From the sequence record LC727699.1: a DNA stretch of 64,000 bases. One strand, given 5' to 3'. Under the pieces are notes generated by a model. That model was not told the DNA's origin, searched no databases, and saw nothing but the letters and a program-made list of their open reading frames with translations. The stretch's first letter is position 1. Each line of letters starts with the position of its first letter. Of the stretch, positions 49,358-56,336 are shown one piece after another. The translations under genes were made by a program, and so were the position numbers.

Positions 49358-50143
49358 ATGCATCGTCGAACTATGTACAGATTTAGCTTATCATATTCCA
49401 ATAAACTTATTAATAATAACCCACTTGGTTTTACAGTCGAGAGTTATCTTGAAAGCTGGTTTGACAAACTCAAGTGTCGATTAACTAAAGGTTATACCAA
49501 AAGCCATGCTATTCATTTTCGTGGAAGTTGGAAATACTTTGAATTAGATCAATATAAGAACAATGCTTTCTTCAATCAATATCACATGGTGATGCAGTCA
49601 CTAGAAGATCTAGAAAGAAAGATTAGTGGAGTGATTGGGTTAAGTATCAAAATCACTAAACCAGAACGACATTTATTTCATGTTCTATTTAACCATGAAA
49701 AGATTATTCTATCCCCTAATGGCATTATCTTTGATGTACGTGTTCCAAAACACACCGTGATAGCTAATCCTGATGTTATGGGATATCGTAATTGCAATGT
49801 AGATAAACTGACGGTATTTGGCGAGCGCTCTAAAGTTAACTATGTGGTTAAACAAGTACGTTATGCCTTAAAGCAGAAAGGGGTGACAACTGTTGCCAAT
49901 AGTTCAATGACTCGTTTTTTATATGACCTATTTCATCCAAAATACAGAGACAATCAAATTTATAACTACGGCATGACTATGTCTGATGTTTATGTAATGG
50001 CCGTATTCAAAAATGGGTATACGGAAATCTATGGTAAAGATGTAGGTGAAATATTTGAAAGTCATACTCTAGATTTTCTAGAACGTGAATACATGATCTG
50101 TGGACAATATTTTCCTAAGCTATCCAGAGGGATGCTAGTATGA
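49358..50143 (+). CDS. Hypothetical protein (start re-called from 49283)
   Basis: AGGA RBS before MHRRT; the track start lies upstream of the terminator. Confidence 0.8.
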   Translation: MHRRTMYRFSLSYSNKLINNNPLGFTVESYLESWFDKLKCRLTKGYTKSHAIHFRGSWKYFELDQYKNNAFFNQYHMVMQSLEDLERKISGVIGLSIKITKPERHLFHVLFNHEKIILSPNGIIFDVRVPKHTVIANPDVMGYRNCNVDKLTVFGERSKVNYVVKQVRYALKQKGVTTVANSSMTRFLYDLFHPKYRDNQIYNYGMTMSDVYVMAVFKNGYTEIYGKDVGEIFESHTLDFLEREYMICGQYFPKLSRGMLV

Positions 50144-51666
50144 TTATAGAAACCTTATTGCAATATTACGCCATGTTCATCGATATCTCTCAGAAGAATA
50201 TGGTTATGGGTGGAGCTATCGGAATGGCAATTGGTGGTTTATTCTGGACCACTCTAAGAGGCTTACCAAGTAAACTAGCTAGGTTCGCATTAAATCAGTT
50301 TACAGTTAGTCTACATATTACCAACATGGGTAATGGGCTGAACGAGAAGAACTTTGATTGTTTCATGGAATGGTATATTAAGCAGCCATTAGCTGGATTT
50401 AATCGACGTTTTTCAACTAATGTTGATGAGCAAAGTTATAGTGCAACTAAACAGAAAATTGGTGTTGGTTTTGGCTTACATTTCTTTCTGTTTAAAGGTA
50501 GGTTATTCTGGTTTGTAAAAGCACGCCGGGATAGTCAAAATGCCAGTCGAGATCAAATGGATATTACTATCCGTGGATTATCTAGGAGTAGTAAACTAAT
50601 TATTGATTTAGTAGATGCTTACCATTGGCGCCCAAATGAAAGGGGTCTGACTATTTCACATTGGGATGGTAACCGTTGGGGCAATGAGATTGAAGTTACT
50701 AAACGCGATATCAACACGGTGATTTTGCGTAAAGAGATCAAAGAAGAATTCCTTAATAAGATTGAAGAATTCTATTCTGATCGGAAATGGTACGATGATC
50801 GTGGACTACCCTATAAATTCACTTGTGTTCTAACAGGTCCTCCTGGTACTGGTAAAACCTCAATCAGTAAAGCGATTGCCTCACATTTTAATAAAAATGT
50901 TAGTGCACTGTCATTAGCCTCTATGACCAATGATAGTCTTAGGCGGGCATTTACTACACTACCTAAAGGTAATATTCTTCTAATTGAAGATTTCGATGAT
51001 ACCCCGGCAGTTAAAGATCGTGTTTTAAATGATCCTGTAAAACTAGATAAAGAGATAAAGGAATTAGAGAGGAAATATTCTTTTATTGATTTAATTGAAA
51101 AATATCCGTCTGCATGGGTTGATCTTAAAGATGACTATGAAGGATACTCTGTAGTTGGGTTTAATGACACCATCTATATCTTTGATGAAAATAGCGATGA
51201 TCAAGGTTTTGGGATAAGTGCTTATGCTATGGCTGAACTGGGTGTTTCAAAATGGGCCGATGAAAAAGATCCATTATTTACCACAATTCGCCGATGGTGG
51301 AAATTAAAGAAGTGCATGAAGAATGGAATCACGTATGAACAACCAGCTAGCGGATTAACTTTGTCAGCTCTATTAAATGGGCTAGATGGCATTGTTCCAC
51401 TAGATGAGACTATGACCATTCTAACTACAAACCATCCTGAGAATATTGATAAAGCACTTCTAAGGAAAGGTCGCGTTGATTACATGGTGGAGATTCCATA
51501 TCTACGAGATCAAGAAGTTAGGGAGTATATTAAACTAATGTTCCCTGACTTCGATATTCCTGAAGATATCAGATTTAAAGATCAGCCAGGGTGTGATGTA
51601 ATGGCGGCTTTTTCAAATAACCGTTATGACCCTAATGCTTTTATCAATAGTCTATTGAAATATTAA
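50140..51666 (+). CDS. BCS1-like membrane-anchored AAA+ ATPase
   Basis: N-terminal hydrophobic helix, GPPGTGKTS, LLIEDFD, TLSALLNGLDG and TTNHPENIDKALLRKGRVD. Confidence 0.85.
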   Translation: MIIETLLQYYAMFIDISQKNMVMGGAIGMAIGGLFWTTLRGLPSKLARFALNQFTVSLHITNMGNGLNEKNFDCFMEWYIKQPLAGFNRRFSTNVDEQSYSATKQKIGVGFGLHFFLFKGRLFWFVKARRDSQNASRDQMDITIRGLSRSSKLIIDLVDAYHWRPNERGLTISHWDGNRWGNEIEVTKRDINTVILRKEIKEEFLNKIEEFYSDRKWYDDRGLPYKFTCVLTGPPGTGKTSISKAIASHFNKNVSALSLASMTNDSLRRAFTTLPKGNILLIEDFDDTPAVKDRVLNDPVKLDKEIKELERKYSFIDLIEKYPSAWVDLKDDYEGYSVVGFNDTIYIFDENSDDQGFGISAYAMAELGVSKWADEKDPLFTTIRRWWKLKKCMKNGITYEQPASGLTLSALLNGLDGIVPLDETMTILTTNHPENIDKALLRKGRVDYMVEIPYLRDQEVREYIKLMFPDFDIPEDIRFKDQPGCDVMAAFSNNRYDPNAFINSLLKY

Positions 51667-52026: not shown

Positions 52027-52680
52027 ATGGCGTCAATCATTAGTCTACCTTTTATCAAACTAGTAATCAGCCGTAATAATAATTACACTGTTAACCATCA
52101 GTCAGGTGCTGATAATGTACCTCATCTATGTGTTAAAGTAAAACATTCTAACGGTTATGCCTGGTTCGGTATTATCATTGTTGATTATGAAAAACGTACC
52201 AGTGGTTGGACTGAAGAAGAATTCAATGCAGTTGTAACTCGTTTCCATGAAGCAATGAATTCTCAATGTGATATCCAACGATTAGAAACAGACATTAACC
52301 GACTAATGGATTCCATCCAAGATGTTGTTACTGGTCGGAAACGACCAACCCTATTCGGCGGTGATAGTAATGACTTCATTCAAATGCATCTTCAAAATAA
52401 TATCCAACTTGATATTTATCGGAATGAAATTAACGAAGATACTCTAACCTATGGTGGGTATCGTGGTAAAGTAAGTCTTCGCCATGGTTATGATGAATAC
52501 AGCTTCTTCCTGTATCATCGTGGTATTATTCTAAACCATTACATCGATGCAGAGATTGCTAAAGAGCTAATTGAAGATGCTCTTAATAAGACTTTCCCGG
52601 AGATTACTTATCTACCGCGAGCCACTGTCGAACCTACAGCAGTGGAACGCACTCGTAATAGACATCTGGATAAAAGTTAA
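52027..52680 (+). CDS. Hypothetical protein
   Basis: 217 aa, AAGGA RBS. Confidence 0.85.
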   Translation: MASIISLPFIKLVISRNNNYTVNHQSGADNVPHLCVKVKHSNGYAWFGIIIVDYEKRTSGWTEEEFNAVVTRFHEAMNSQCDIQRLETDINRLMDSIQDVVTGRKRPTLFGGDSNDFIQMHLQNNIQLDIYRNEINEDTLTYGGYRGKVSLRHGYDEYSFFLYHRGIILNHYIDAEIAKELIEDALNKTFPEITYLPRATVEPTAVERTRNRHLDKS

Positions 52681-52681
52681 A

Positions 52682-53095
52682 ATGACTAGTCAACTTATCG
52701 TAGTTGATTTACAAAACCCTAGAAATAAACATATATACAGTGAATTAACTCATGAACACCCTAGAACAATAACATCACATCTAGTTGAAGAATTAGATGA
52801 TTTTGATGTTCATCAATATTCATACCAAGCGGAGTATAAATCTGGGATTGATCTTAGATTAATATTCTTTTGGGATGGACCATACACTGAACCAAGAGAA
52901 GAAGGTTACGAACCAACTGATCTAGAGAAAAGGTGTGTGAAGTTGTGTAGGCAATATGAGGCTGCGATTAACGGGCAATTATCTGTAGTTGATCACTCTC
53001 GGTTCCGGACGGTGTGTACCTTCAGATCAGATAATAGTTTACCAACAACTTTAGACTGGATTCATAAAGAACCCCCATCTAAAGAGGTTGTGTAA
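52682..53095 (+). CDS. Hypothetical protein (start re-called from 52571)
   Basis: MTSQLIV begins immediately after the previous stop. Confidence 0.75.
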   Translation: MTSQLIVVDLQNPRNKHIYSELTHEHPRTITSHLVEELDDFDVHQYSYQAEYKSGIDLRLIFFWDGPYTEPREEGYEPTDLEKRCVKLCRQYEAAINGQLSVVDHSRFRTVCTFRSDNSLPTTLDWIHKEPPSKEVV

Positions 53096-53188
53096 AAAAT
53101 AGTAAAAGAAATACACTATTCTATGTAGTTCCTTTACGATTGCTCTTTTATCTTAGTTTCAGTTTTGCTGAAGAAGTACCAATGAGAT

Positions 53189-53215
53189 ACCCTCCCCTGA
53201 TCGGGGAGGGTTTTT
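53189..53215 (+). terminator. Intrinsic terminator
   Basis: ACCCTCCCC-TGATC-GGGGAGGGT followed by TTTT. Confidence 0.85.
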
Positions 53216-53236
53216 GACATCTAAGAGGAAAATATA

Positions 53237-53617
53237 ATGTGCAAACAACATCGTGTAGTATCTATGAAAGTTACATGCACGCAAGCTCGCTATCCGATCG
53301 GTCTGTGCGATCTCGGATTTGATAATGCTGCTGATGCTCGGCAATATCTACTAGATGTCGTCGAGTACAATATGGATCGTCTCCACCCACAACATGCTAA
53401 TACATTCCAGCTACAAAATCTACAAGACGGGTTCGTAGTATCCTACGATATCGAAAAAGATGGATCCGTTTATCTTCGGTTAACACTGGCGGCTGTAGCT
53501 TATCAATCAATCGATCTTGAGTTGGGGGTTACCGTTAAAGAAAATGAAGGGATCAGTGTTGTAATCAAAAATTGGATCAATGGTGATTATACTGCGGGGA
53601 ACAAATACTTACAGTAA
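53237..53617 (+). CDS. Hypothetical protein
   Basis: 126 aa, GAGGA RBS. Confidence 0.8.
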   Translation: MCKQHRVVSMKVTCTQARYPIGLCDLGFDNAADARQYLLDVVEYNMDRLHPQHANTFQLQNLQDGFVVSYDIEKDGSVYLRLTLAAVAYQSIDLELGVTVKENEGISVVIKNWINGDYTAGNKYLQ

Positions 53618-53622
53618 TACCA

Positions 53623-53747
53623 TATGTAAAGAATACCCAAATCGGGATCTCCCGGACTATCTCCCTTCAGCGTTCCCGTCCGCAAATGAAGGTGCCGCCG
53701 AGATCCCACCTATTGATAATGCCCTCCCTTCGGGGAGGGCATTATTT
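53623..53747 (+). ncRNA. Candidate pseudoknotted RNA or attenuator leader
   Basis: TATG start, 8-bp P1 enclosing an H-type pseudoknot, then a UUCG terminator. Confidence 0.5.
53717..53747 (+). terminator. Intrinsic terminator
   Basis: TAATGCCCTCCC-TTCG-GGGAGGGCATTA followed by TTT. Confidence 0.85.
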
Positions 53748-53783
53748 CGCTTAAGCCTATTTATTTTATTATAAGGAGTGAAA

Positions 53784-54515
53784 ATGACATATATCGTAAA
53801 TGATGGTAAAGTCATGATTGCAGACTGCCTATTAATTGAGCGGAATAATGCAACTGATAGCATTGGGCGACTTCCAGTATTAGATAACGGTTATATTGAT
53901 CTAACTGCTAAAGCTGAAGGTGTAGATGTATATTACAATGATTGCCACAAGATAATTTTTCATCCGACAGTTACTTGGCAAGGTAAACGTGTTAAAACTA
54001 TGGCTTTTGCTGGAACTATAGATAATGTTTATGATCTATTGAATGCCCTTACCGCAGGTGTTGATTTAGCTGATTGGTTTAAAGTTGAAGTAAATATCTT
54101 GCCAGTCATAGAACGCAGGTTGTTTAATGGTAATACTTCTATGATGTTCACTATGGAGAATGGTGACATATATACAGTTATTCTTAAAGACATGGGTATC
54201 AACATCACCAAGAAAGATTGGGCTCATTTGGGTAGTGGTGTAGATGCAGTTAATAGTGTACTTGAGTTTATCCCTAATTGTAATGATAATGGATCAACCA
54301 AACTAACTGCACTTGAAGCATTTGCTATTGCATGTGCACATACTACTACTGTAAGTCGTAAATTTGATTATTACATCCATGCTACAGGTGAGTACAAGCA
54401 AAATCAAGAACTATCAACTAAACAACTAAAATGGATACTAGCGCGCATTCAAAAGCGGATGGATCTTACCCGCATTTTCAATGACCGCGAATATGCCAAT
54501 AACATATGGGGTTGA
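53784..54515 (+). CDS. HslV/proteasome-beta-like Ntn-hydrolase
   Basis: ATG 53784 (AAGGAG RBS) gives an N-terminal Thr: M-TYIVNDGKVMIAD, HKI, MAFAG, HLGSG and LTALEA match HslV T1/D17/K33/GFAG/IGSG landmarks. Confidence 0.7.
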   Translation: MTYIVNDGKVMIADCLLIERNNATDSIGRLPVLDNGYIDLTAKAEGVDVYYNDCHKIIFHPTVTWQGKRVKTMAFAGTIDNVYDLLNALTAGVDLADWFKVEVNILPVIERRLFNGNTSMMFTMENGDIYTVILKDMGINITKKDWAHLGSGVDAVNSVLEFIPNCNDNGSTKLTALEAFAIACAHTTTVSRKFDYYIHATGEYKQNQELSTKQLKWILARIQKRMDLTRIFNDREYANNIWG

Positions 54516-55036
54516 TTTGTATGAGTGATTCTAATATGGATATGCTATATTACACTAATGTAAATTGGGAACAATATTTTCATCACGTGAAACAACGGGC
54601 AGATGATACTGTTAAAGTAATGTATAAACCTGAATATGAAGATCTTATTGATGAAGCATGTAGACCATTGATTAAATGGTTTAACCAATTCACCAATATT
54701 GCAACTATTTATTGCTGTTCAGGTCATGTTGATGAAGAAACTGGTGGTAGCCCTGGATACATTAGTATTTTATTTCAAGATACCAATGCAGAGAATTCTG
54801 TAATGCGTTTATTGCGTGAAGCAATGTGTAAGGGGCGTGAGTGTAAGATCCCATTCGAAATTGAACTGGGGGTTTATTTCGGGCATCTACATGAGACCAT
54901 TGATAAAAATCACTGGGTCGCCAATCTAATTATCCGCACCAATAGCTACAAACGTAAAAATACGTATGATCGCTATTGGCATCGTCTTTACAACATCATA
55001 ACAACATGTAATACTGAGGGTTTATACACCATCTAA
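54506..55036 (+). CDS. Hypothetical protein with TYW3-like N-terminal motif
   Basis: IDEACRPLIKWFN....ATIYCCSGH resembles TYW3/Taw3 D..I..L...IN.....T.SSCSG. Confidence 0.6.
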   Translation: MGLICMSDSNMDMLYYTNVNWEQYFHHVKQRADDTVKVMYKPEYEDLIDEACRPLIKWFNQFTNIATIYCCSGHVDEETGGSPGYISILFQDTNAENSVMRLLREAMCKGRECKIPFEIELGVYFGHLHETIDKNHWVANLIIRTNSYKRKNTYDRYWHRLYNIITTCNTEGLYTI

Positions 55037-55054
55037 AGAATCTGAGATAATTTA

Positions 55055-55204
55055 ATGAATGATATTAAAAATACATTATTAGTTAGATTAAAGAGGAAAC
55101 AAAAAGCTAAGCGTATAGATAAATTGCAAAGACTAGGTTTATGGTTTATTCTATTGCTATGTGTATCTAATCTATTTGTCCAATTAATAAAAGGTATATT
55201 CTAA
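55055..55204 (+). CDS. Small membrane protein (49 aa)
   Basis: Basic N-terminus plus C-terminal hydrophobic LGLWFILLLCVSNLFVQLI; abuts the next ATG. Confidence 0.6.
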   Translation: MNDIKNTLLVRLKRKQKAKRIDKLQRLGLWFILLLCVSNLFVQLIKGIF

Positions 55205-55885
55205 ATGGCAGAAAAGCTAAGTTTTGTTGATATATTTAAGATGGCTAAAGAGGAAAATGTTAAGCTTGAATTGCATTGTCTAATTGGTACTCGACCAGTT
55301 AGGGGTCTTATTAAAAGTTTAAACTTTAATCAAATCAGACCTGATATATACGAATCTGTTAATCTATATGTAGATGTATTTTCTAAAGTAGTAGAGACTA
55401 GAGTAGATCTATCGAGTACTACTGCTGATTATGGTTGCTGGAGAATGACACCAGAAACTAAGAATTATGTAGATAGTAAATATAACTTACCAGTAAAAAT
55501 GGATATCACTAATCCAGATATCGTTAGGAGTAATATTAATTATTATCTCAGTTTACCTACTCAGGAACGCATTGAATTATTTAATAAAATAAATAATCCT
55601 AATGTCATTGAGGCGATAAACAAAGAATGGTCTAAGATGGTTGTAGAATATTATCAATCTGAGATCGATTTGTTTATTGGATTAATTGATTTCGATCATG
55701 TCCTTATCAATAAGTTCATGGCATTTAACTGGATGGACGATTTATTTGAGTATGCTTTAAATATCCCATTAAAACAAACCAATACAGTAAATGAAGGCAC
55801 CTGTTGCTTACTGGTTCACAAAGATAAAAAGGCAACATATACCCATCTCACTGATATTAAAAATCTTATCAAAGTGAGTGTATAA
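55205..55885 (+). CDS. Hypothetical protein
   Basis: 226 aa, last gene of the + block. Confidence 0.85.
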   Translation: MAEKLSFVDIFKMAKEENVKLELHCLIGTRPVRGLIKSLNFNQIRPDIYESVNLYVDVFSKVVETRVDLSSTTADYGCWRMTPETKNYVDSKYNLPVKMDITNPDIVRSNINYYLSLPTQERIELFNKINNPNVIEAINKEWSKMVVEYYQSEIDLFIGLIDFDHVLINKFMAFNWMDDLFEYALNIPLKQTNTVNEGTCCLLVHKDKKATYTHLTDIKNLIKVSV

Positions 55886-55897
55886 TTACGGCATAAA

Positions 55898-55919
55898 CCC
55901 CTCTCCGCATGGAGAGGGG
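55898..55919. terminator. Terminator at the convergence of the + and - blocks
   Basis: CCCCTCTCC-GCAT-GGAGAGGGG between convergent stops. Confidence 0.8.
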
Positions 55920-55946
55920 CTATGTCTTTATTTTCTTTATTTAAAC

Positions 55947-56336
55947 TCACTTAGAATAATCTTCTACTGGAATATCATCTAGCCAATCATTAAGTAGTTT
56001 AAATTGTTGAGGGTGTTGCATCTTAGTTACTTTACCGTATTTAACACTAATAGCGTAACCACCAGATACTGCAAGATCCACTAGTTTGCGTTCATATGCA
56101 TTAAATTCATCATACCAACGGGTATGAATAAGTTTTGCTAAGCGTGCATATGCAGTCTTACGATATTGATCTTCCTGTTCCCGACGTAGGACTTCAAGTA
56201 GTTCTTTCTGACGCTGCTTCTGCTGGCGTTTCTCTTCTTCCTTTTTCTCTTTCTCCAGTCGTTTTTTCTCAGCAATGTGTGATAGAATGGGTAGCTTGAA
56301 AAGCAGACTTAGAATTAGTTGAAAGAATTGTTTCAT
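55947..56336 (-). CDS. Hypothetical protein with charged coiled coil (start re-called from 56381)
   Basis: GAGGA RBS before MKQFFQL; EKKRLEKEKKEEEKRQQKQRQKE. Confidence 0.8.
   Translation of the reverse strand: MKQFFQLILSLLFKLPILSHIAEKKRLEKEKKEEEKRQQKQRQKELLEVLRREQEDQYRKTAYARLAKLIHTRWYDEFNAYERKLVDLAVSGGYAISVKYGKVTKMQHPQQFKLLNDWLDDIPVEDYSK

Follow-up and report, generated by a model that had tools for sequence, protein, structure and literature searches.

Gene 289 of phiKZ-type jumbo phages encodes a diverged protein of the proteasome family that is probably a threonine peptidase

The gp289 gene and its start codon

The DNA analyzed here (the window, 64,000 nucleotides of sequence record LC727699.1) stems from a phiKZ-type jumbo phage; its positions 53000-56000 share 100% identity with Pseudomonas phage sp. 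LC and 99.5% with phiKZ. The open reading frame at 53784-54515 is gp289 of phiKZ (PHIKZ289, NP_803855), and the evidence assembled below places its product among the N-terminal nucleophile (Ntn) hydrolases of the proteasome/HslV type and suggests that it is an active threonine peptidase. The protein is 98.8-100% identical across approximately 40 Phikzvirus isolates, and the near-identical genome of PA7 contains a single copy of the gene. Among the records listed, it appears only as 'hypothetical protein', 'phage protein' or under a bare locus name, and one metagenomic homologue has been automatically named 'HslVU peptidase subunit' by JGI. A search of the full-text literature found no paper on gp289 under the names searched, nor one on HslV in connection with phiKZ. 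The gene and its translation signal are located as follows:

53784..54515, plus strand: coding sequence of gp289 (243 amino acids, 27.5 kDa, isoelectric point 5.7), a proteasome-family Ntn protein, as documented by sequence, homologues, AlphaFold model, RNA contigs and size-exclusion chromatography coupled to mass spectrometry (SEC-MS)
53773..53778, plus strand: Shine-Dalgarno sequence AAGGAG, 5 nucleotides upstream of ATG 53784, read from the sequence

A preliminary description of the locus, made from the sequence alone, had preferred ATG 53784 over a GTG at 53778 as the start codon and had pointed to the threonine immediately behind the initiator methionine. Both statements hold. The AAGGAG is properly spaced for ATG 53784, while GTG 53778 overlaps this very sequence and therefore cannot make use of it. 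An in-frame TAA is located three codons upstream of ATG 53784, and the phiKZ RefSeq entry places the start of PHIKZ289 at the same ATG. In the orthologues from a metagenomic locus (L008), Psa21 and PA1C, an in-frame stop codon is found 1-7 codons upstream, without an alternative start codon in between. Met-Thr is therefore the true N-terminus, and the upstream stop codons leave no room for a propeptide. Bacterial methionine aminopeptidase accepts threonine next to the initiator methionine, and E. coli HslV matures in exactly this way.

Conserved residues and relationship to HslV-type proteins

When 1.84 billion representative proteins were searched in depth with a profile, 42 relatives of gp289 came to light; a search for the family with an alignment of six sequences gave four viral loci. 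All conservation counts given here refer to an alignment of 32 of the 42 relatives, which span 17-100% identity. The gp289 family is small and distinct and constitutes its own profile family as well as its own PHROG (25842). Residues that correspond to the catalytic apparatus of proteasome-type proteins are encoded at the following positions:

53787..53789, plus strand: codon for Thr2, the predicted N-terminal nucleophile (Thr1 after removal of methionine), based on conservation and superposition of the model on mature residue 1
53823..53825, plus strand: codon for Asp14, counterpart of proteasome Asp17, conserved in 32/32 and aligned to the aspartate of the HslV-like proteins of phages EL and SPN3US
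53949..53951, plus strand: codon for Lys56, counterpart of proteasome Lys33, conserved in 31/32 and aligned to the lysine of the EL protein
54012..54014, plus strand: codon for Gly77 in A-F-A-G, counterpart of the oxyanion-hole residue Gly47, conserved in 32/32 and aligned to F-A-G of E. coli HslV and S-G of the EL protein
54231..54239, plus strand: codons for Gly150-Ser151-Gly152, counterpart of the proteasome/HslV G-S-G (Ser129/Ser124), aligned to G-S-G of HslV and of the EL and SPN3US proteins

All but one of the 32 members start with Met-Thr, and the remaining one starts with Met-Ser, as does the protein from phage PhiPA3. Gly150 is invariant, just like Asp14 and Gly77, and the sole exception at Lys56 resembles a misalignment by one column. 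The matches of the motifs IAD, HKI, AFAG and LGSG with Asp17, Lys33, GFAG and IGSG of HslV, which had been proposed by eye, thus proved to be real and conserved, and they are in register when the family profile is aligned by hhalign with the HslV-like protein of phage EL. A further invariant residue, Asp195, was considered as the counterpart of proteasome Asp166 and dropped, because hhalign puts it 8 residues downstream of the Asp166 position; judged by this alignment, Asp195 is a residue specific to the family.

In the hhalign comparison, the gp289 family profile matched the HslV-like protein of phage EL with a probability of 96.6% and an E value of 6e-10 over 157 columns, with Met-Thr, the aspartate, the lysine, the glycine and G-S-G all in register. 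The probability amounted to 92.7% for the SPN3US protein and to 42% for E. coli HslV, where F-A-G and G-S-G align. The model phrog_1040 ('peptidase HslV family'), which recovers HslV or proteasome genes in nine control genomes, matches gp289 weakly (E = 5e-5, 24 bits); it matches 14 of the 32 members, the best of them at E = 3.6e-9. Searches against PDB sequences with the single sequence or a six-sequence profile returned no proteasome-family chain, and with the 32-sequence profile HslV chains came out as the best matches, at non-significant E values of 0.1-1.

Predicted fold

An AlphaFold model calculated from 32 sequences reached a predicted local distance difference test score (pLDDT) of 92.6 and a predicted template modeling score (pTM) of 0.85, and all five models scored at least 91. 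It superseded a first model based on six sequences (pLDDT 71), in which the insert described below was disordered and the C-terminus formed a 30-residue helix. Already with this first model, all matches listed by Foldseek against the PDB, at least 500 in number, were proteasome-family chains. The final model exhibits the four-layer alpha-beta-beta-alpha sandwich of Ntn hydrolases with helices H1-H4, and its residue 2 pairs with residue 1, the nucleophile, of mature beta5i, HslV, BPH, Anbu and connectase.

Independently of Foldseek, the model was compared with 48,161 PDB representatives using VIA-align, with a second round over Foldseek's best 1000 chains. The 20S beta subunits obtained Z scores of 13.4-14.4 (165-174 residues aligned, root-mean-square deviation (rmsd) 3.2-3.8), the value of 14.4 being the best among Foldseek's best 1000 chains. 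They were followed by Anbu with Z 12.7-13.8 (186-191 residues aligned, up to model residue 237, rmsd approximately 5 A), HslV with Z 11.5 (153 of 171 residues aligned), BPH with Z 11.4, the 20S alpha subunits with Z 9.3-10.7 and connectase with Z 8.2 (141 residues aligned). Other Ntn hydrolases, namely acid ceramidase, NAAA, bile-salt hydrolase, penicillin acylases and PvdQ, did not exceed Z 7.7. The non-Ntn fold that the preliminary description had named as refuting its reading was not seen, the matched chains being of the proteasome family with Z scores of up to 13-14.

Profile alignment and fold, independently of each other, therefore support homology of gp289 to the proteasome/HslV superfamily, and the E value of 6e-10 and the Z scores put this agreement well outside the reach of coincidence. 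The earlier designation of the protein as HslV/proteasome-like with an intact N-terminal threonine is sustained by fold, profile and invariant residues insofar as it denotes an Ntn protein of the proteasome/HslV type. It has to be given up insofar as it denotes HslV specifically: gp289 fails the HslV and Pfam models, Z scores are higher for 20S beta subunits and Anbu, and no hslU gene is annotated in the locus. gp289 should not be classed as HslV and belongs to a distinct family characterized by an insert, an H5-like helix and a C-terminal tail.

Insert, C-terminal helix and tail

The three elements that set the family apart are located as follows:

53826..53948, plus strand: acidic family-specific insert, residues 15-55, isoelectric point 4.3, between the aspartate and the lysine of the triad, with strands at residues 17-22 and 47-51 (alignment; model pLDDT 89-95)
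54417..54458, plus strand: amphipathic basic helix, residues 212-225, corresponding to H5 in Anbu and the 20S beta subunits (assigned by DSSP in the confident model; beta5 and Anbu alignments to residues 221-237)
54459..54512, plus strand: C-terminal tail, residues 226-243, with conserved Tyr237-x-Asn239 (alignment; model pLDDT 60-80)

The aspartate and the lysine are separated by 41 residues in gp289 and by 22-41 residues across the family, as compared with 15 in HslV and the proteasome, confirming the insert before the Lys33 counterpart that had been noted earlier. In gp289, it adds 26 residues between these two positions, which are structured in the model and lie beside the substrate channel. 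In connectase, this S3/S4 site is occupied by a signature insertion that lies over the active site and makes the enzyme specific (Fuchs, Alva and Lupas 2021, PMC8665760). We infer that the insert of gp289 shapes substrate access.

A C-terminal helical extension had also been described, and the helix itself is real (residues 212-225). It is largely a counterpart of H5, and only the tail formed by residues 226-243 lies outside the known fold. Structural alignments to 20S beta subunits and Anbu reach model residues 218-237, and the hydrophobic positions 218, 219, 222 and 226 in the helix region are conserved. H5 of 20S beta subunits and Anbu provides ring-to-ring contacts or forms a coiled coil (PMC8665760); the idea that the C-terminal helix of gp289 recruits substrates or replaces HslU is speculation. 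In the tail, the tyrosine is present in 59% and the asparagine in 78% of the members, and in several of them the motif is the literal C-terminus. All members possess 39-57 residues beyond the last core strand region. Because the insert and the C-terminal extension are present across the members, they are features of the family and not of phiKZ only.

Expression and assembly

RNA-seq contigs from four independent studies cover the whole of gp289. Upstream of the gene, a terminator structure was found:

53718..53743, plus strand: G+C-rich hairpin (11-bp stem, TTCG loop) with a T-rich run behind it, serving as intrinsic terminator for the small RNA or transcript upstream (sequence; terminator scan; complementary DNA (cDNA) 3' ends)

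In Nanopore cDNA, poly(A)-tailed 3' ends occur at 53712 and 53748, just past the upstream hairpin, and a separate contig of 1,089 nucleotides (53746-54834) covers gp289 and extends into the following gene, gp290. It therefore appears that gp289-gp290 form a unit of their own behind a functioning terminator; such contigs cannot establish the transcription start. A scan of the region for sigma-70 promoters gave fewer sites than shuffled sequence and is irrelevant for this phage.

The protein has been detected as well: the SEC-MS source data of Fossati et al. (PMC10449902; sheet Fig1F) list PHIKZ289 with three elution peaks, as opposed to one for most phiKZ proteins, in a lysate from which monomers had been depleted by concentration over a 100-kDa filter. 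Detection extends to the PhiPA3 orthologue.

Directly upstream of gp289, a very abundant short RNA maps to 53544-53751, with a Nanopore contig depth of approximately 840 versus approximately 26 over gp289; it has a loose end resembling a 5' adapter at 53626, and its 3' ends at 53712/53748 coincide with the hairpin terminator. A second spike, with a depth of approximately 3,300 in Nanopore cDNA and poly(A)-tailed 3' ends at 53214/53215, is located at 53133-53269 between gp287.1 and gp288 and probably represents a further abundant small RNA or else a stable fragment from a 3' end. Directly past gp291, where the plus-strand gene block meets a minus-strand block, a strong terminator-like hairpin (9 bp, 7 of them G-C pairs) is present at 55898-55919, and RNA contigs from several runs break there.

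Distribution and gene neighborhood

Members of the gp289 family were found in Phikzvirus, the T2P/U1B group, RVTF4, Psa21/D6, Viktualia, PhiPA3 (gene 355) and PA1C-like phages as well as on a small number of jumbo-phage contigs from metagenomes; of three distant members tested, one had no match among sequenced phages. All members of known source stem from jumbo phages, and the sequenced ones all infect Pseudomonas. Three neighboring genes are relevant for the comparison of genomes:

50140..51666, plus strand: gp286, a BCS1-type AAA ATPase and the sole candidate for a phage-encoded unfoldase partner, the link to gp289 being putative (Pfam AAA and BCS1_N; BCS1 match)
52027..52680, plus strand: gp287, syntenic neighbor approximately 2 kb upstream of gp289 homologues (tblastn; annotated upstream in PhiPA3 and PA1C)
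54521..55036, plus strand: gp290, starting 5 nucleotides past the gp289 stop codon (phiKZ annotation; Nanopore cDNA contig across the junction)

The genomes of phiKZ/PA7, PhiPA3, PA1C, Psa21 and G002 combine a member of the gp289 family with a gp286-type BCS1-like AAA ATPase and gp287. Phage 201phi2-1, which we take to be the closest relative of PhiPA3, contains gp287 and lacks both gp289 and gp286. In EL, SPN3US and RAY, gp289, gp286 and gp287 are all absent and a compact protein of the PHROG-1040 type is present, and OBP has neither the three genes nor the compact type. gp289 and the compact type never occur together in the genomes examined. Nucleus-forming phages hence have either of two proteasome-type genes as alternatives, or neither.

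Synteny of the block gp285-gp286-...-gp287-...-gp289-gp290 extends across phiKZ, PhiPA3 and PA1C. gp287 is better conserved than gp289 across distant Pseudomonas jumbo phages and exhibits 47-51% identity (tblastn) at the loci L008, L009 and L010. It is not strictly linked with gp289, since 201phi2-1 has the former without the latter. No match for gp287 was found in family models or the protein Atlas; a PLoS Pathogens paper cites it among early phiKZ proteins, with DnaX or FtsZ of the host as its reported binding partner. A gp290 homologue directly follows the gp289 homologue in PhiPA3 as well. gp289 and gp290 are probably co-transcribed and translationally coupled, and gp290 could be a functional partner of gp289. 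The product of gp290 shows a weak, sub-threshold Pfam match to TYW3 methyltransferase (E = 0.002).

Proposed function and alternative explanations

On the basis of sequence and model, we consider it likely that gp289 is a catalytically competent, highly diverged Ntn threonine peptidase of the proteasome family, which would be oligomeric and act on a restricted set of proteins. Nucleus-forming jumbo phages thus very probably carry a proteasome-type protease of their own. As for E. coli HslV, host methionine aminopeptidase would remove Met1 and thereby free the amino group of the threonine together with its hydroxyl group, which would serve as the nucleophile. Asp14 and Lys56 are predicted to complete the triad, with Gly77 supplying the oxyanion hole. 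The acidic insert sits where the proteasome forms a substrate-binding strand and probably narrows or defines specificity, while contacts between subunits or with partners are probably made by the basic H5-like helix and by the Tyr-x-Asn tail. In this scheme, gp289 would most likely work as an oligomeric protease during infection of Pseudomonas by nucleus-forming jumbo phages, with a restricted set of phage or host proteins as its targets. Among nucleus-forming jumbo phages, phiKZ serves as the model, and the majority of its genes lack an assigned function. The assignment would provide gp289 with a concrete and testable biochemical role.

A number of points weigh against this assignment and have to be set out. 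To our knowledge, robust peptidase activity has not been shown for Anbu, one of the closest structural matches. In the gp289 family itself, Ser151 of the G-S-G motif is a serine throughout the phiKZ clade and in no more than 15 of the 32 members, and counterparts of proteasome Asp166 and Ser169 are not clearly conserved, the variable Thr187 aligning with the Asp166 position. The Pfam Proteasome model PF00227 matches neither gp289 nor any of the 32 members, even at E values of up to 1-10, and the NCBIfam HslV equivalogs (TIGR03692, NF003964) do not match gp289, with E. coli HslV as the control scoring 3e-91. The elution behavior suggests that the 27.5-kDa protein sits in assemblies larger than a monomer, and three peaks are not proof of a ring. 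The full-text literature search retrieved no enzymatic or genetic data for gp289 or other members of the family. Finally, connectase is a ligase (PMC8665760), so a proteasome homologue that keeps its triad need not be a general protease.

In a first alternative, gp289 is a highly sequence-specific processing enzyme or a transpeptidase (ligase), working as a monomer or dimer like connectase, with the insert closing over the active site and selecting a single motif. The position of the insert at the same S3/S4 site as the connectase signature insertion is in line with this idea (PMC8665760), as are its confident structure, its presence in every member at a spacing of 22-41 residues and the lack of an encoded partner of the HslU type. 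Moreover, several insertions in newly found proteasome homologues have been described as seemingly incompatible with ring assembly (Fuchs et al., PMC8665760). On the other hand, the structural similarity to connectase (Z 8.2 over 141 residues) falls behind that to 20S beta subunits, Anbu and HslV (Z 11.5-14.4), the ring-contact helices H1-H4 and the H5-like helix are all present in the gp289 model, and the protein was recovered in three SEC peaks after enrichment for assemblies above 100 kDa. We therefore regard a connectase-like enzyme as unlikely.

A second alternative connects gp289 with gp286. Here, gp289 would be the peptidase half of an ATP-dependent protease with the BCS1-type gp286 as its unfoldase, and the complex might act at host ribosomes. 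gp286 matches mitochondrial BCS1 with an E value of 4e-38, its Walker A and B motifs are intact, and it has a hydrophobic N-terminal segment; approximately 110 extra residues separate Walker B from the C-terminal half of the AAA domain. BCS1 rings are heptameric like proteasome-type rings, and the BCS1 entries contain seven chains each. When eight flanking open reading frames were scanned, an AAA domain was found in gp286 only, and no HslU-like gene is annotated in the locus. The presence of gp286 was scored with the gp286 protein as the query, which detected it in 4/4 positive genomes, and with PF00004; Pfam BCS1_N matched no control genome. By this measure, gp286 accompanies gp289 in 5/5 genomes and is encoded in 0/5 genomes without gp289 (201phi2-1, EL, OBP, RAY and SPN3US), and 201phi2-1 retains gp287 without the other two. 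In phiKZ, PhiPA3 and PA1C, the two genes are 2-5 kb apart. Furthermore, gp286 and gp285 (49358-50143) elute together with the host 70S ribosome and form cross-links to it, in the case of gp286 to the L7/L12 stalk (Fossati et al., PMC10449902).

These arguments are counterbalanced by others. The two genes are separated by approximately 40 kb in Psa21 and G002, and the co-occurrence essentially reflects one clade plus one joint loss. Being the outcome of few independent events, it hints at a partnership that has a slim chance of being real. BCS1 is a translocase for folded proteins and not known as the partner of a protease. Fossati et al. place gp286 with ribosomes and do not mention gp289 alongside (PMC10449902), and no AAA+ partner was found for any of the new proteasome homologues (Fuchs et al., PMC8665760). 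A gp286-driven protease thus appears quite unlikely. Its most far-reaching version has to be considered a long shot: gp289 and gp286, possibly with gp285 and gp290, would constitute a previously unknown ATP-dependent protease, in which a peptidase ring and a heptameric motor of the BCS1 family remodel or degrade translation components or nascent chains at host ribosomes. If the link to gp286 were physical, ATP-dependent proteolysis would gain a new architecture, and a new means by which a phage takes over host translation would come into view.

Lastly, it is very unlikely that gp289 is a dead pseudo-protease with a structural or regulatory role, comparable to alpha subunits or to beta subunits without activity, or that it is an amidase of the Ntn clan with a substrate other than protein: many proteasome-family subunits are indeed inactive, no curated protease model recognizes gp289, and the Ntn clan includes acylases and amidases that appear lower in the list of structural matches, but inactive subunits lose Thr1, Asp17 or Lys33, while the gp289 family retains all of them together with the oxyanion glycine in 32 sequences with identities as low as 17%, and the gene structure enforces a free N-terminal threonine. 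Within the Ntn clan, only the proteasome family has the Thr-Asp-Lys triad, and non-proteasome members reach Z 7.7 at most.

Comparison with known systems

By sequence, the nearest relatives of the gp289 family are the compact HslV-like proteins of PHROG 1040 from EL, SPN3US and RAY (gp116). Like gp289, they stem from jumbo phages of the chimallin type, lack a propeptide and are not accompanied by an hslU gene. Unlike gp289, they comprise only 163-182 amino acids without insert, H5 helix or tail, and the EL and SPN3US proteins match phrog_1040 at approximately 1e-41 as compared with 5e-5 for gp289. RAY gp116 was reported to localize to the phage nucleus (bioRxiv 10.1101/2023.02.24.529968). The compact copy of RAY apparently starts with Met-Ser and may use a serine nucleophile, as may the PhiPA3 orthologue of gp289.

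HslV (ClpQ) shares with gp289 the Met-Thr start, the exposure of the threonine by removal of methionine and the aligned F-A-G and G-S-G motifs. It has approximately 175 amino acids and neither insert nor H5, whereas gp289 has 243 amino acids with insert, H5-like helix and tail and has no hslU gene annotated in its locus. The highest Z scores were obtained for 20S beta subunits (MEROPS T1, PF00227), which have the arrangement of Thr1, Asp17, Lys33 and Gly47 as well as H1-H4 and H5 in common with gp289. The phage protein differs from them by the absence of a propeptide and of an alpha-subunit partner, by the 26 extra residues between aspartate and lysine and by short helices H1 and H2.

Anbu sits in a conserved bacterial operon that includes genes for ATP-grasp and transglutaminase-like proteins. 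Such an operon is absent around gp289, whose neighbors are functionally unassigned phage genes together with the gene for the BCS1-type AAA ATPase. Compared by structure only, Anbu (PDB 5nyg, 5nyw, 5lox) resembles gp289 in its size of approximately 240 amino acids, its Met-Thr start and its lack of a propeptide and yields the longest structural alignment; it deviates with an rmsd of approximately 5 A and a long H5, as opposed to the 14-residue C-terminal helix in the confident gp289 model. The long H5 of Anbu forms a coiled coil with the opposing subunit (PMC8665760).

Connectase, with its Thr1 nucleophile without a propeptide, has an insertion at the same site between aspartate and lysine beside the active site. 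It is set apart from gp289 by the low Z score and by the absence of the first helix pair (PMC8665760), which is present in gp289. Fuchs, Alva and Lupas (2021) reported that phages encode proteasome homologues (PPH, AAH, CPH, PMI-4 and DAH) for which no AAA+ partner could be identified (PMC8665760); their article and its supplement do not mention gp289 by name. The descriptions given there distinguish gp289 from PPH, which has approximately 140 amino acids and lacks H2, and from the group I proteins, which have neither insertions nor H5. That phages encode proteasome homologues such as PPH and AAH is therefore known already (PMC8665760), and PHROGs contain a hint in the same direction, while the gp289 variant and its assignment in phiKZ are new. 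gp289 adds a structurally distinct branch to the proteasome homologues, marked by the H5-like helix, the Tyr-x-Asn tail and the insert by the substrate channel.

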